This document shows, piece by piece, positions 12,988-41,041 of a DNA stretch of 64,000 nt. Within the stretch, counting starts at the first letter, position 1, and each line of letters opens with the position of its first letter. This DNA comes from Phaeosaccion multiseriatum. Its lineage: Eukaryota > Protista > Ochrophyta, other classes. Under the pieces are notes generated by a model. That model made no database searches and had not been told where the DNA came from. It was given only the letters and a program-made list of their open reading frames with translations. The stretch lies in contig OZ218950.1 in the NCBI GenBank assembly GCA_965112735.1, positions 2,294,001 through 2,358,000 of the forward strand. The letters run 5' to 3'. The translations under genes and the position numbers were made by a program.

Positions 12988-15063
12988 ATGCCCCCACGTT
13001 GGGAAGAGACTGCAGCTCATGTGGACGAGTGGTATGATGGTGCCAAGGAGAGGGAGGCGGCAGGCTGGGGCAGCAGCACGGAGCATCTCCTCCTCCTGCT
13101 CAAGGTTGTCTTGGTTGCAGTTGATCTCAACACCTCAAAGAAGGGCTACACTCCCCTCCATGCCCTGGTCGACATGGACAAGAAGAGCGAGAAGTCACGG
13201 TGCTCGGAGGAGAGGGGCATGAACATGCTGGATAGCGTCAGGCTGCTGCGGAAGTGCGGCTTGGACGTCTCTAAAAGTGGAAGTGCTTTGCACAAAGCTG
13301 CTTTGGAGGGGAACTTTGGCCTGGTCAAGGGGCTGGTGGAGGCGGGTGTAGATGTCAACGGGAAAAACGAGTATGGATGGTCTTCTCTCGCTTGTGCTGC
13401 TCATGGAGGTCACACCCTCATCGTGTGGTACTTGCTGCGGCACGGGGCGGTAGCGGCCGGCAGCGGGGCCTTGCATGACGCAGCCTTTTGCGGGAGCTCT
13501 GAGTGTGTCAAGCTGCTGCTCAAGGAGAGGGCCGACCCAAATGAGAAGAACCGAGACGATCACACGGCAGCCCAGGTCTTATGCATGGGGGAGAATGGGG
13601 ATGCGAGAGGGAGGAGGGACAGCCTGCGTTTGCTGCTCAAGAGCGGCGCCGATGTGAACGTCAAGACGCACAGAGGCAGTAGCCTCCTGCACCTTATCGC
13701 GGAGCGTGGCAACGAGCAGTGCATCCCGTTGTTGCTGGAGAACGGTTTGCAGATTGATTCCAGAAACAATCGTATGAGGACGCCGCTTTTTTGGGCTTGC
13801 TGCTTTGGACATTTGTCGTGTGCGAAGGATCTCATTCACCGTGGCGCGTCCCTGGACTTGGCTAATGATAATGGTAGCACACCCCTCTTCGGGGCGGTAT
13901 CCAAGGGTCACGCGAAGATCGTTGCCGAGCTCATACGGGCTGGTGCGTCTGTCAAGGTGAAGGACATAACTGCAGTGACACCCCTGCATATGGCCGCCGC
14001 TTTGGGCAGCAGCGAGGATGTCTATCTGCTGGTGGAGGCAGGGGCTGAGATCGATGCTCTCACGGACACCAAGCAAAGCCCTTTGATGGCCTGCATGCAT
14101 CCTGATGAAGAAGACATGTCAGAGGCGCTGCAGAGTTTCGAAACTGAAGCAGGAAGCAAGGAGGACCGCGAGGAGGTGGCCACGTTTCTCCTCAAGATGG
14201 GGGCTGCTGTCGACGAGAAGGTGTTCGATTTGGCTTCACAGAGCGGCTTCAGTGGGGTCATTGCCTCAATGTTCAACAAGGGGAGGGAGAAGGTGGAGGA
14301 TATCGCTGACAAGCTAGACACCGTAGCGGAGCACTATTCCGTGCTAGGTGGCAGCACTAACAAGGACGACATTTCTCAAGATGTGGTGTATGTGCGACTG
14401 GTGGACAAAGTGAGCGGTGCGAAGGGAGAGAAGCTGTACGCTTTGAGCATCCCTCTGGTGGAGCAGCTCATGAAGAAGGTCAGGGAAGGAGGAGGAGAAC
14501 GTTCTCCGAGCACCAGCGACCGCTCCTCGCCAGCGGGCATTCTCTCCACTTTACTGGACCCTTCCAAGCGCGGCTTCATGGGCAGTGGGAAGGGAAAGGG
14601 CAAAAGTAAGGGCAAGAGGAAGGAGGTGGAGCTGAAGTATGATGGTGTGTGCTTTACCGAGGAGGGCTTTGGAGCTGTGGTCAAGTTCGTCACCACGGGC
14701 AGCGTGGAGGAGCTGCTGACGACAAGGCCGGGATCAGCAGGGAAGAGGAGGAGAGGCCAAGGCAGCAGCAGTAGTGGAGGAAGGCAGGAGATGGGTGGCG
14801 ATGACGCAGGAGGCAGCAGCAGTAGCAGTAGCAGGGGTGGGAAGAGGAAGGAGCGCACGAAGCTGTTTGACGAGGTCAGAGCGAAGCAGGCCCTGCAGGC
14901 AGCGGACTTCTTCTGTCTGGAGAGCATGTCGAGGGAGGTGAAGGCTCTGATGAGCGAGTACGGCTTTGAGCTGCAGGAGGAGAAGGATGGAGGGGGAGAA
15001 GGAGGAGAGGGAGGTGATCGCGAAGGACAGCCCTCGCGAAAGAGAGCGAGGACTGATTCATGA
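12988..15063 (+). CDS. Intronless ankyrin-repeat protein with C-terminal BTB/POZ-like domain (paralogue 1)
   Basis: 691-aa ORF with about 9 ankyrin repeats (TPLH/TPLF, GADVN). C-terminal FTEEGFGAVVKFVTTG...ALQAADFFCLESM resembles the BTB core. Terminal basic NLS-like RKRAR. Confidence 0.85.
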   Translation: MPPRWEETAAHVDEWYDGAKEREAAGWGSSTEHLLLLLKVVLVAVDLNTSKKGYTPLHALVDMDKKSEKSRCSEERGMNMLDSVRLLRKCGLDVSKSGSALHKAALEGNFGLVKGLVEAGVDVNGKNEYGWSSLACAAHGGHTLIVWYLLRHGAVAAGSGALHDAAFCGSSECVKLLLKERADPNEKNRDDHTAAQVLCMGENGDARGRRDSLRLLLKSGADVNVKTHRGSSLLHLIAERGNEQCIPLLLENGLQIDSRNNRMRTPLFWACCFGHLSCAKDLIHRGASLDLANDNGSTPLFGAVSKGHAKIVAELIRAGASVKVKDITAVTPLHMAAALGSSEDVYLLVEAGAEIDALTDTKQSPLMACMHPDEEDMSEALQSFETEAGSKEDREEVATFLLKMGAAVDEKVFDLASQSGFSGVIASMFNKGREKVEDIADKLDTVAEHYSVLGGSTNKDDISQDVVYVRLVDKVSGAKGEKLYALSIPLVEQLMKKVREGGGERSPSTSDRSSPAGILSTLLDPSKRGFMGSGKGKGKSKGKRKEVELKYDGVCFTEEGFGAVVKFVTTGSVEELLTTRPGSAGKRRRGQGSSSSGGRQEMGGDDAGGSSSSSSRGGKRKERTKLFDEVRAKQALQAADFFCLESMSREVKALMSEYGFELQEEKDGGGEGGEGGDREGQPSRKRARTDS

Positions 15064-38914: not shown

Positions 38915-41041
38915 TCACTCAGTGTTTTTGCCGGATGGATCAGTCCTCGCTCTCTTTCGCGAGGGCTGTCCTTCGCGACCAACCCCGTCTCCTCCTTCTC
39001 CCCCTCCACCCATCTCCTCCTGCAGCTCAAAGCCGTACTCGCTCATCAGAGCCTTCACCTCCCTCGACATGCTCTCCAGACAGAAGAAGTCCGCTGCCTG
39101 CAGGGCCTGCTTCGCTCTGACCTCGTCAAACAGCTTCACCTGCCCTTTTCTCGCCGCCCCACTGCTGCTGCTGCTGCTGCTGCTGCTGCTGCTGCTGCCT
39201 CCTGCGTCATCGCCACCCATCTCCTGCCTTCCTTTGCCTCTCCTCCTCTTCCCTGTTGATCCCGGCCTTGTCGTCAGCAGCTCCTCCACGCTGCCCGTGG
39301 TGACGAACTTGACCACAGCTTCAAAGCCCTCCTCCGTAAAGCCCACACCATCACACTTCAGCTCCACCTCCTTCCTCTTGCCCTTGCCTTTGCCCCTCCC
39401 CTTCCCGCTGCCCATGAAGCCGCGCTTGGCGGGGTCAAGTAAAGTGGAGAGAATGCCCGCTGGCGAGGAGCGGTCGCTGGTGCTCGGAGAACGTTCTCCT
39501 CTTCCTTCCTTGACCTTCTCCATGAGCTGCTCCACCAGAGGGATGCTCAAAGCGTACAACTTTTCTCCCTTCGCACCGCTCACTTTGTCTACCAGTCGTA
39601 CATCAACTTCTTCGCCACTGCCGCCCAGCATGGAGTAATGTTCCGCTACGGTGTCGAATCTGTCCGCGACAGCATCTCGCTCCCCTCTGGCCTTGTTGAA
39701 CATTGAGGCAATGACGCCACTGAAGCCGCTGTGTGAAGCCAAATCCAAGACCTTCGCGTCCACAGCAGCGCCCATCTTGAGGAGAAACGTGGCCACCTTC
39801 TCGCGGGCCTCCTTGCTTCCTGCCTCAATCCTGCTAATCTCCAGCGTTTCTGCCATGCCTTCTTCGTCAGGATGCATGCAGGCCATCAAAGGGCTTTGCT
39901 CGGTGTCCGTGAGAGCATCGATCTCAGCTCCTGCCTCCACCAGCAGATAGACATCCTCGCTGCTGCCCAAAGCGGCGGCCATATGCAGGGGTGTCCTTCC
40001 AGCCATGTCCTTCACCTTGACAGACGCACCAGCCCGTATGAGCTCGGCAACGATCTTCGCGTGACCCCTGGATACCGCCCCGAAGAGGGGTGTGCTACCA
40101 TGATCATCAGCCAAGTCGAGGGACGCGCCACGGCGAATGAACTCCTTTGCATACGCCAAACTTCCACAGAAGCAAGCCCAAAAAAGCGGCGTCCTCATAC
40201 AATTGTCTCTGGAATCAATCTGCGAACCGTTCTCCAGCAACAAGGGGATGCACTGCTCATTGCCATACTGCACGGTGAGGTGCAGGAGGCTACTGCCTGT
40301 GTTCGTCTTGTTCGTCTTGACGTTCACATCGGCGCCGCTCTTGAGCAGCAAAGCCAGGCTGTCCCTCTTCCCTCTCGCTTCCCCGTCCTGCCCCATGCAT
40401 AAGACCTGGGCTGCCGTGTGATCGTCTCGATTCTTCTCATTTGGGTCGGCCCTCGCCTTGAGCAGCAGCTTCACACACTCAGAGCTCCCGCAATAGGCTG
40501 CGTCATGCAAGGCCCCGCTGCCGGCCGCTACCGCTCCATGCCGTAGCAAGTACCACACGATGAGGGTGTTACCTCTAATAGCAGCCCAAGCGAGAGGAGA
40601 ACATCCATACTCGTAATGTTCTTTCTCGTTGACATCTACACCCGCCTCCACCAGCCCCTTGACCAGGCCAAAGTTCCCCTCCCAAGCAGCGTTGTGCAGA
40701 GCATTTCCACTTTCGGAGACGTCCAAGCCGCACTTACGCAGCAGCCTGACGCTATCCAGCATATTCAGGCCCCTCTCCTCCAAGCACCGTGCCTTCTTGC
40801 TCTTCTTGTCCATGTCGAGCAGGGCATGGAGGGGAGTGTAGCCCTTCTTCTTTGAGGTGTTGAGATCAACTGCAACCAAGACAACCTTGAGCAGGAGGAG
40901 TAGATGCTCTGCGCTGCTGCCCCAGCCTGCCGCCTCCCTCTCCTTGGCGCCCTCATACCACTCGTCAACATGAGCCCCAATTCTATTGAAGCGCTCCATC
41001 ATGCTCCTCTCTTCTTTCCAGATGGGGAGGGGAGGGTCCAA
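38915..41041 (-). CDS. Intronless ankyrin-repeat protein with C-terminal BTB/POZ-like domain (paralogue 2)
   Basis: 708-aa ORF, colinear and highly similar to 12988-15063 from AHVDEWY to RKRARTD. Confidence 0.85.
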   Translation of the reverse strand: MDPPLPIWKEERSMMERFNRIGAHVDEWYEGAKEREAAGWGSSAEHLLLLLKVVLVAVDLNTSKKKGYTPLHALLDMDKKSKKARCLEERGLNMLDSVRLLRKCGLDVSESGNALHNAAWEGNFGLVKGLVEAGVDVNEKEHYEYGCSPLAWAAIRGNTLIVWYLLRHGAVAAGSGALHDAAYCGSSECVKLLLKARADPNEKNRDDHTAAQVLCMGQDGEARGKRDSLALLLKSGADVNVKTNKTNTGSSLLHLTVQYGNEQCIPLLLENGSQIDSRDNCMRTPLFWACFCGSLAYAKEFIRRGASLDLADDHGSTPLFGAVSRGHAKIVAELIRAGASVKVKDMAGRTPLHMAAALGSSEDVYLLVEAGAEIDALTDTEQSPLMACMHPDEEGMAETLEISRIEAGSKEAREKVATFLLKMGAAVDAKVLDLASHSGFSGVIASMFNKARGERDAVADRFDTVAEHYSMLGGSGEEVDVRLVDKVSGAKGEKLYALSIPLVEQLMEKVKEGRGERSPSTSDRSSPAGILSTLLDPAKRGFMGSGKGRGKGKGKRKEVELKCDGVGFTEEGFEAVVKFVTTGSVEELLTTRPGSTGKRRRGKGRQEMGGDDAGGSSSSSSSSSSSSGAARKGQVKLFDEVRAKQALQAADFFCLESMSREVKALMSEYGFELQEEMGGGGEGGDGVGREGQPSRKRARTDPSGKNTE

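Follow-up and report, generated by a model that had tools for sequence, protein, structure and literature searches.

The genes that we call A and B, which lie on opposite strands of the 64-kb stretch of DNA analysed here (the window), are probably best explained, taken as a whole, as two functional, intron-free nuclear paralogues whose proteins would each consist of an ankyrin solenoid, a conserved linker and a BTB/POZ-fold domain. Their parts are as follows.

12988-15063, + strand: gene A, one unbroken ORF of 691 aa that encodes ankyrin repeats, a linker, a predicted BTB-fold domain and a basic/acidic tail
13138-14223, + strand: ten ankyrin repeats of A (residues 51-412; Pfam Ank/Ank_2 and register table)
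14224-14382, + strand: linker of A (residues 413-465), placed within the silently divergent segment 14254-14439
14383-14967, + strand: predicted C-terminal BTB/POZ-fold domain of A (residues 466-660; AlphaFold and Foldseek against the PDB, family alignment; no Pfam match)
15037-15051, + strand: basic RKRAR motif of A's C-terminal tail, resembling a monopartite nuclear localisation signal
38915-41002, - strand: gene B, a single ORF of 695 aa counted from the first ATG at 41002
39749-40849, - strand: ten ankyrin repeats of B (residues 52-418; Pfam and register table)
39554-39718, - strand: equivalent in B of A's silently divergent segment, with 14 silent differences among 40 informative codons
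39029-39601, - strand: predicted BTB/POZ-fold domain of B (residues 468-658)
38945-38959, - strand: RKRAR motif of B

Two intron-free paralogues among ordinary genes

The earlier note had described A and B as a colinear, intronless pair, and this description held: both reading frames are open over the extents listed above (B from its first ATG, 41041 being only the mechanical start of the ORF, at a TTG), their proteins are 81% identical over 701 aligned residues, and every peptide pair quoted in that note occurs in the translations. The DNA of 13015-15061 is 88.5% identical to that of 40975-38935. The similarity starts at codon 10 and stops no more than two codons from the stop of A, and when the flanks of both copies were compared no alignable similarity was found outside the coding sequence, the first nine codons and the flanks being each copy's own and unrelated to the other's. 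Coding dS between A and B is about 0.08, yet the flanks cannot be aligned, and it is for this reason that a recent segmental duplication was rejected as the origin of the pair. A tblastn search of the window returned A and B as the only copies.

Both genes are intact and without introns, amid neighbours that have them. Those neighbours are ordinary eukaryotic genes, with kinase, NOSIP-like, EF-hand, YidD, TCP-1 and MPN exons, and the codon use of A and B is host-like, with a GC3 of 0.69 compared to 0.61-0.72 in adjacent exons. No NCLDV hallmark gene or other viral-type ORF was found near A or B in the window, its only other long ORF is of low complexity, and an Rfam scan of it gave no match. 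The reading of the window as a viral insertion was rejected because hallmark genes are absent and the composition is that of the host.

Where the two copies differ

Ankyrin repeats were the sole Pfam family matched in the full-length proteins, Ank and Ank_2 (PF00023 / PF12796) matching both with E-values of 1e-44 to 1e-49, and ten tandem repeats could be set in register; in A, repeats 1, 5 and 10 have inserts and the turns of repeats 2 and 4 are shortened. The concave face of such a solenoid would bind a protein target. As the surface class we took positions 2, 3, 5, 13, 14 and 33 of each registered repeat, the positions randomised in DARPins, which vary in ankyrin repeats of every kind. The contention of the earlier note that A and B differ chiefly on this binding surface was borne out, in that 18 of the 56 surface positions carried substitutions (32%) versus 25 of the 258 elsewhere (10%), for 43 substitutions in registered repeats (Fisher one-sided p=5e-5). 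Its finer observations were also sound: the beta-turn and helix 1 held 31 substitutions in 155 positions, versus 12 in 159 for the rest (p=0.001), and all three ankyrin indels fell within beta-turns (alignment columns 51, 129-130 and 233-235). Such clustering far exceeds chance, but taken alone it is what is expected of any ankyrin protein, since the DARPin positions are the least constrained.

The note's claim of diversifying selection survived only in part. Purifying selection on the scaffold, the linker and the core of the predicted BTB-fold domain is evident in both copies: omega was 0.57 in the non-surface ankyrin positions, 0.28 in the linker and 0.39 in the C-terminal part, and only four of 90 structured residues of the BTB-fold domain differ between A and B. 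At the surface, this one pair of sequences had 21 replacement differences over 140 sites and one silent difference over 28 sites, giving an omega of 4.6 with the surface's own dS, which rests on that one silent difference. Set against the pooled ankyrin dS (21/140 versus 17/222), surface dN was higher by a ratio of 2.07 (p=0.02, one pair), but against the whole-gene dS the ratio was 1.07 and not significant. Positive selection at the ankyrin surface is thus only suggestive, as there are two sequences and an omega above 1 hinges on the local dS. On the paralogue reading, the binding faces of A and B would have diverged towards different targets.

A tentative alternative, less likely than the paralogue reading given at the outset, is that there was no adaptive diversification at all, and that weak constraint on exposed, non-consensus ankyrin positions after duplication has left copies that are redundant or drifting. 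The variability of the DARPin positions in all ankyrin repeats is in keeping with this, as are the omega of 0.88-0.98 across the whole ankyrin region, the equality of surface dN with whole-gene dS, and the finding that surface changes are chemically no more radical than the rest (mean BLOSUM62 scores of -0.44 and -0.16, not significantly different). Against it stand the excess of surface dN over local dS, a stretch of the alignment (columns 296-357) with seven replacement changes and no silent one, and the fact that both ORFs are intact with an omega of 0.3-0.6 outside the surface.

The silent differences between A and B are themselves unevenly spread (permutation p=2e-4), amounting to about 5-7% in the ankyrin repeats versus 35% in one linker segment. 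This mosaic points to gene conversion, and on such a gene-conversion-like history of the two paralogues the earlier note had been silent. Gene conversion confined to the coding sequence would keep A and B alike, and, if the domain assignment described below holds, the pair would offer a compact two-gene system for the study of how gene conversion coexists with binding-surface divergence.

A predicted BTB fold and its possible partners

The earlier note had seen a BTB-like region in each protein, and of this claim the fold fared well and the sequence did not. No BTB-type Pfam family matched the full-length A and B proteins at E≤1, and in the C-terminal domains of five family members (A, B and the three relatives described below) PF00651 (BTB), the match by which that note had proposed to confirm the domain, was absent even at E≤10, as were PF02214 (BTB_2), Skp1 POZ and all further BTB models of Pfam; among PDB sequences, neither phmmer nor a profile search retrieved anything. 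By such searches, similarity to the catalogued BTB families is undetectable. The fold was instead predicted by AlphaFold (AF2) from a five-sequence alignment, and the models, which are not solved structures, had pLDDT values of 70-90 in their structured elements and a pTM of 0.73 for P0002:318-463. Their elements run strand-strand-helix-helix-strand-helix-(hairpin)-helix-helix, the core topology by which BTB domains are judged being B1-B2-A1-A2-B3-A3-A4-A5. The best 50 Foldseek matches in the PDB were all of BTB/POZ fold, including the KEAP1 BTB, KCTD15, KCTD1, KCTD5, KCTD16, ZBTB8A, myoneurin and Skp1, with probabilities of 0.97-1.0, TM to target of 0.5-0.68 and modest E-values (5e-3 to 3e-2), and the structural matches in BFVD were BTB proteins of giant viruses and poxviruses. 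The domain is accordingly predicted to have a BTB/POZ fold, albeit a very divergent one, which in A would carry two low-complexity loop inserts, one Gly/Lys-rich and the other Ser/Gly-rich with KRRR. If the assignment holds, A and B may be a sequence-orphan version of the ankyrin-plus-BTB adaptor architecture, in which the BTB-fold domain would oligomerise the protein and/or dock a cullin-RING ligase and the whole would serve as a substrate adaptor.

Cullin-3 is the partner that the earlier note had proposed, and its recruitment was not supported. In the alignment of A, B and the three relatives, 3-box/BACK helices are absent after the BTB-fold domain: P0003 ends three residues and P0002 eight residues past a conserved YGF, and the tails of A and B are Gly/Glu low complexity. 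The loop before strand B3, to which we presumptively assign the Cul3-contact motif (it is the alpha3-beta4 loop of long-form BTBs), holds a family-specific LL.P...GF element, after which the Gly/Lys insert comes in A and B. In A55 the motif is hydrophobic-x-D/E (quoted in a preprint). Within the loop of the family, an invariant GF is followed by M-G (A and B), K-G, S-K or K-D, so that no conserved hydrophobic-x-D/E is recognisable and only P0003 fits, in a sequence alignment that assumes structural equivalence of positions. A and B might bind Cullin-3 through this domain, and their nuclear action may be suggested by motifs: RKRAR is conserved in both tails, as had been claimed, and it, KRRR and KRK are candidate monopartite nuclear localisation signals (basic clusters of the form K-(K/R)-x-(K/R)) in A and B. 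RKRAR is missing from the three relatives.

It is as conceivable as drift at the ankyrin surface, and hence also short of likely, that the C-terminal domain is a plain oligomerisation module (T1/KCTD-like) or a Skp1-like one, and that the proteins are multivalent ankyrin scaffolds with no role in ubiquitination. KCTD T1-type domains have the highest TM to target (0.60-0.68; 0.64-0.68 for KCTD15), and like the domain of A and B theirs is a short BTB with no N-terminal extension or 3-box; the want of a recognisable Cul3 motif fits too, and there are many BTB proteins to which Cul3 does not bind. However, many KCTDs do bind it, and a repeat domain with a BTB is the standard layout of a Cul3 adaptor. 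KCTDs also differ from A and B in having the BTB at the N-terminus and no ankyrin repeats, while A and B have no Pfam BTB_2 match.

Other known proteins offer comparisons of varying closeness. In the animal proteins ABTB1 (BPOZ), ABTB2 and BTBD11, ankyrin repeats at the N-terminus precede BTB domains at the C-terminus, the same order of a presumed recognition domain and a BTB module, but their BTB is recognised by PF00651, their ankyrin repeats are few and their BTB domains often two, whereas A and B have ten repeats, one Pfam-invisible BTB fold (as predicted) and long low-complexity loop inserts; a sequence relationship is undetectable. The BTB-Kelch Cul3 adaptors, such as KEAP1 and vaccinia A55, likewise join a target-binding repeat domain to a BTB, and the KEAP1 BTB is among the best structural matches (probability 1.0, TM 0.53-0.59), but their domain order is the reverse, identity is 8-16%, and A and B have neither BACK/3-box nor an identified conserved Cul3 motif. 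BTB and ankyrin are also combined in plant NPR1/NPR3/NPR4 and BOP, of which the NPR proteins are nuclear in action and cooperate with Cul3 in immunity. By analogy these would be the closest precedent for the immune idea of the earlier note, but in them the BTB comes first and is recognisable as PF00651, the C-terminal domain is NPR1-like, and homology to A and B was not detected.

That idea, a host family of immune-like, variable-recognition Cullin-3 adaptors under diversifying selection that would deliver pathogen proteins to the ubiquitination machinery inside the nucleus, now seems improbable, and an immune-like role for A and B is speculation. The predicted BTB fold, the surface clustering with a surface omega of 2-4.6, and the RKRAR and KRRR motifs all agree with it, and homologues in a giant virus would suit an arms race, but the 64-kb stretch contains only two copies and public protein sets no further ones, there is neither a recognisable Cul3-binding determinant nor a 3-box, and the selection signal is a p-value of 0.02 from one pair that is gone against the whole-gene dS. 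An immune system of a new type does not emerge from the present evidence.

Relatives on giant-virus-like contigs

When 1.84 billion representatives were searched exhaustively with phmmer, three relatives came up (P0001, P0002 and P0003), all on metagenomic contigs of a single ENA assembly, ERZ1426853. The alignment of A to P0001 is colinear across 619 columns, with an E-value of 1e-64. No further members came from word-indexed searches with residues 400-691 of A, the C-terminal region of P0001 (which returned only P0001 itself) and a family profile, or from scans of IMG/VR, JGI metagenomes and GTDB genomes with that profile. The "family" of the earlier note thus shrinks to two copies in the window and three relatives in all public searches. 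The relatives' contigs are gene-dense (10 genes within 11.8 kb, 15 within 10.3 kb) and one has a poxvirus-type VLTF3 gene (Pox_VLTF3), from which it would follow that the family is shared with a giant virus; going by gene density and one VLTF3 match, the contigs may be called giant-virus-like. This setting of the relatives had escaped the earlier note. The gene family would have passed, in either direction, from giant virus to eukaryote lineage or back.

It could be argued that two independent giant-virus insertions left A and B behind as remnants, or that the two are viral paralogues captured separately, rather than products of host duplication and gene conversion. The confinement of their similarity to the coding sequence, their unrelated first nine codons and flanks, the uneven divergence along the gene, their lack of introns amid intron-bearing neighbours and the multiple copies on viral-type contigs would all fit. 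This reading is nonetheless as improbable as the immune one: neither copy has viral hallmark genes or other viral-type ORFs near it, A and B resemble the host in composition and codon use, they share an N-terminal extension of 85 residues and a C-terminal tail, both missing from the relatives, and their identity to each other far exceeds the 30-37% of either to the relatives. Slightly less probable still is the fuller scenario in which A and B represent, on the host side, an ankyrin/BTB-fold effector family of a giant virus, or were its source, and now act against viral proteins or are mimicked by them in competition for a ligase or targets, with faces that diversify under conflict and a scaffold kept uniform by gene conversion.

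If the domain assignment holds, there would be a sequence-orphan BTB-fold family outside Pfam, fused to ankyrin repeats and present both in a giant virus and in a microbial eukaryote, and this would extend the list of ubiquitin-system adaptor modules that large DNA viruses have traded with their hosts. The ankyrin/PRANC host-range proteins of poxviruses come to mind, as they too have an ankyrin solenoid and a C-terminal module, which in PRANC is for ligase docking. No PRANC or F-box Pfam match was found in A, B or the family's C-terminal domains, and A and B differ in having a (predicted) BTB fold of 140-200 residues rather than a 40-residue, F-box-like PRANC, and in residing in a cellular chromosome. 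The poxvirus proteins are multi-copy and fast-evolving in large DNA viruses, and it is on giant-virus-like contigs that the relatives of A and B are found.

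The gene pair and its C-terminal domain

Genes A and B are paralogues, each coding for ten ankyrin repeats, a linker and a C-terminal domain for which a BTB/POZ fold is predicted.

Gene A: 12988-15063, + strand, ATG-initiated ORF, 691 aa
Gene B: 38915-41041, - strand, ORF with its first ATG at 41002, 695 aa from there

The two proteins align over their full length (701 columns; 81% identity, 87% positives), and at the DNA level blastn placed 13015-15061 against 40975-38935 with 88.5% identity. Scans of the window by blastn and tblastn produced no further sequence resembling them. 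All the peptide pairs quoted in an earlier note on this DNA were found in the translations.

The only Pfam families matched by A and B were those of ankyrin repeats (E 1e-44 to 1e-49), with no match to the BTB, BTB_2, Skp1, PRANC or F-box models at E<=1. Nothing relevant was found with Pfam at E<=10 for the C-terminal domain of any of the five family members, i.e., A, B and three relatives on giant-virus-like contigs (P0001, P0002 and P0003), and phmmer and profile searches with the domain against all PDB sequences gave no match. Modelling of the C-terminal 237 residues of A with the five-sequence alignment returned structured elements with a pLDDT of 70-88 and disordered low-complexity inserts between them, and the model of the compact homologue, P0002 residues 318-463, had a mean pLDDT of 76 and a pTM of 0.73. 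The predicted order of elements, strand-strand-helix-helix-strand-helix-(hairpin)-helix-helix, is that of the BTB/POZ core. In a Foldseek search of the PDB with the P0002 model, the top 50 matches were all BTB/POZ-fold proteins, including the KEAP1 BTB, KCTD15/1/16/10, ZBTB8A, PATZ1, myoneurin, KLHL26 and Skp1 (probability 0.97-1.0, E 5e-3 to 3e-2, TM to target 0.5-0.68); the model of A gave the same picture with weaker scores. A search of predicted viral structures gave matches to BTB proteins of pithoviruses, mimiviruses, pandoraviruses, medusavirus and poxviruses. The label "BTB-like" in the earlier note is thus upheld by predicted structure and Foldseek at the level of fold, but not by sequence, and the domain is a predicted BTB/POZ fold yet a sequence orphan. 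A Cul3-binding long form, a KCTD/T1-like form and a Skp1-like form are candidate subtypes, and the assignment stops at the fold level.

Divergence between the copies

Rates were estimated for A against B, a single sequence pair, by the Nei-Gojobori method. In addition, the ten repeats were placed in register and the positions that differ between the copies were counted. The six positions considered to form the binding surface (2, 3, 5, 13, 14 and 33) are those randomised in DARPin design.

Table. Nei-Gojobori estimates, A versus B
Whole gene: omega 0.55, dS 0.157
Ankyrin region: omega 0.98, dS 0.082
Linker: omega 0.28, dS 0.55
C-terminal part: omega 0.39

Table. Differing/total repeat positions, A versus B
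DARPin-randomised positions: 18/56, one-sided p=5e-5 versus other repeat positions
Other repeat positions: 25/258
Beta-turn plus helix 1: 31/155, one-sided p=0.001 versus remainder
Remainder of repeat: 12/159
Core consensus positions: 7/135

The copies have diverged at the ankyrin binding surface, and the three repeat indels all fall in beta-turns. The scaffold is under purifying selection; non-surface repeat positions have an omega of 0.57, and in the BTB-fold domain 4/90 structured residues differ, against 13/93 in loops and inserts. The surface clustering described in the earlier note is borne out by these counts, but it is expected of any ankyrin protein, and the case for positive selection lies only in an excess of surface replacements over silent change. 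Surface-class codons differ by 21 replacements (140 sites) and by a single silent change (28 sites). For this one pair, the ratio of surface dN to dS is 2.07 with the pooled ankyrin dS (Fisher p=0.02) and only 1.07 with the whole-gene dS, a modest excess that is no more than suggestive of the note's diversifying selection. The replacements at the surface were not chemically more radical than those at other positions.

The silent divergence, counted among codons with identical amino acids, is mosaic. Silent differences amount to 4.5-7% across the repeats and 1.7% over the final 70 columns, and rise to 35% (14/40) in columns 429-490 (scan-statistic permutation p=2e-4); the longest identical run is 125 nt. 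Flank alignments showed that similarity begins at codon 10 and stops within two codons of the stop of A, with the sequences upstream and downstream wholly unrelated despite a coding dS of ~0.08. The pattern is most simply explained by an old duplication after which gene conversion partly homogenised the coding sequence. The linker segment would have been left unconverted. On the ankyrin face, the copies would have come to differ after the last conversion, or their differences there would have been shielded from it; either origin fits target specificities that have diverged. Separate acquisition of two related genes we rate lower than duplication with gene conversion, as the viral-contig relatives lack both the ~85-residue N-terminal extension and the C-terminal tail that A and B have in common, and as A and B resemble each other far more than either resembles any relative.

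Relatives on giant-virus-like contigs and possible function

An exhaustive phmmer search with residues 400-691 of A against 1.84 billion representative proteins found three proteins (E 1.5e-16, 5e-6 and 1e-4), P0001, P0002 and P0003, each a singleton cluster from ENA assembly ERZ1426853 and each carrying this C-terminal domain after ankyrin repeats. No additional family member was found in a word-indexed collection of 5.8 billion proteins, IMG/VR, JGI metagenomes or 185,579 bacterial and archaeal genomes. The colinearity of A with P0001 spans 619 columns (33% identity, E 1e-64) and takes in the last repeat, with its idiosyncratic interruption, and a KR-rich insert. The contigs of the relatives carry densely packed genes on both strands, 10 in 11.8 kb and 15 in 10.3 kb, most of them ORFans, and that of P0001 also codes for a glutaredoxin and the late transcription factor Pox_VLTF3, which belongs to the core genes of nucleocytoplasmic large DNA viruses. 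The relatives are mutually deeply diverged (33-39% identical in the C-terminal domain), and the presence of three paralogues on separate virus-like contigs of one assembly indicates that the family is multi-copy on the viral side. One relative shares its 10.3-kb contig with a RING-finger gene.

A and B have the same layout and probable logic as their nearest known counterparts: ABTB1/ABTB2 (ankyrin then BTB), poxvirus ankyrin/PRANC proteins, BTB-Kelch adaptors (KEAP1, vaccinia A55), KCTD proteins and plant NPR/BOP proteins. Unlike these, the BTB-fold domain of A and B is unrecognisable by sequence and has long loop inserts, the family has no 3-box, and its known members so far are confined to one pair of eukaryotic loci and one giant-virus-like assembly. 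If the analogy with repeat-plus-BTB proteins holds, the ankyrin groove would bind a protein target, and the BTB-fold domain would oligomerise and might dock a cullin-RING ligase. Neither a 3-box nor a BACK domain follows the BTB-fold domain in the family: a conserved YGF closes the last helix, and P0003 ends 3 residues after it and P0002 8 residues after. At the loop we take to be equivalent to the Cul3-contact loop of A55, the family alignment has a family-specific LL.P...GF element instead, with no conserved acidic residue after it. The A55 contact motif, as quoted in a preprint, is hydrophobic-x-(D/E). An adaptor for Cul3 is, by analogy, a possible but somewhat doubtful role for the domain, and a plain oligomeric scaffold is about as probable. 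Basic motifs, KRRR in a loop insert of A and B (KRKR in P0001) and RKRAR, confined to the tails of A and B, would fit nuclear import at the motif level. The immune-like reading in the earlier note is possible, but nothing supports it directly.

Genomic setting

The window is ordinary eukaryotic nuclear DNA, with a GC of about 57% and no viral hallmark genes among the Pfam matches of its ORFs; Rfam gave no match. GC3 is 0.69 in A and B and 0.61-0.72 in neighbouring exons, with which their codon usage correlates (r=0.74). Scattered exon-like ORFs match a CaM-kinase-like kinase, a NOSIP-like RING/U-box, an EF-hand, YidD and an MPN-family protein, and a TCP-1 match was weak, below Pfam's cutoff.

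11746-12567, - strand, NOSIP-type zinc finger/RING-U-box ORF (E 3e-9), head to head with gene A
21197-24310, + strand, uninterrupted ORF of 1037 aa, the longest in the window, between A and B
34602-35489, + strand, ORF with a C-terminal part matching the bacterial-type membrane-insertion factor YidD (E 4e-25)

The position of an E3-ligase-like gene beside a putative ligase adaptor may well be coincidence; the gap of ~420 bp between them includes a (TC)48 tract (12579-12673). The longest ORF is low-complexity, with poly-Gly, poly-Glu, poly-Ser, poly-Gln and poly-Asn runs and no Pfam match. The YidD match lies behind a long N-terminal extension, which suggests an organelle-targeted protein and, from that, an organism that has a plastid or else an unusual mitochondrial complement.

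Positions 1-1464 and 4426-5889 form a direct repeat of 1464 bp (100% identity, offset 4425 bp), both copies of which contain a (TCC)26 microsatellite and an ORF of 226 aa; the repeat stems either from very recent tandem duplication or from misassembly. The window is unusually rich in microsatellites (72 TRF rows in 64 kb), and several produce long spurious ORFs in a mechanical ORF list. A (GTAT)160 tract (38114-38751, 98% purity), ~160 bp downstream of the stop codon of B, accounts for a local GC dip to 0.48. Other long tracts are (GTGA)114 at 6738-7193, (AGG)151 at 7897-8350, (GT)119 at 24748-24985, (GGGTA)84 at 28656-29088 and (CCCT)92 at 46540-46907. Minisatellites lie upstream of the NOSIP-like ORF (11171-11357, 31-bp units x 6 copies, 98%) and beside the EF-hand ORF (33221-33598, 40-bp units x 9.6 copies, 93% matches).
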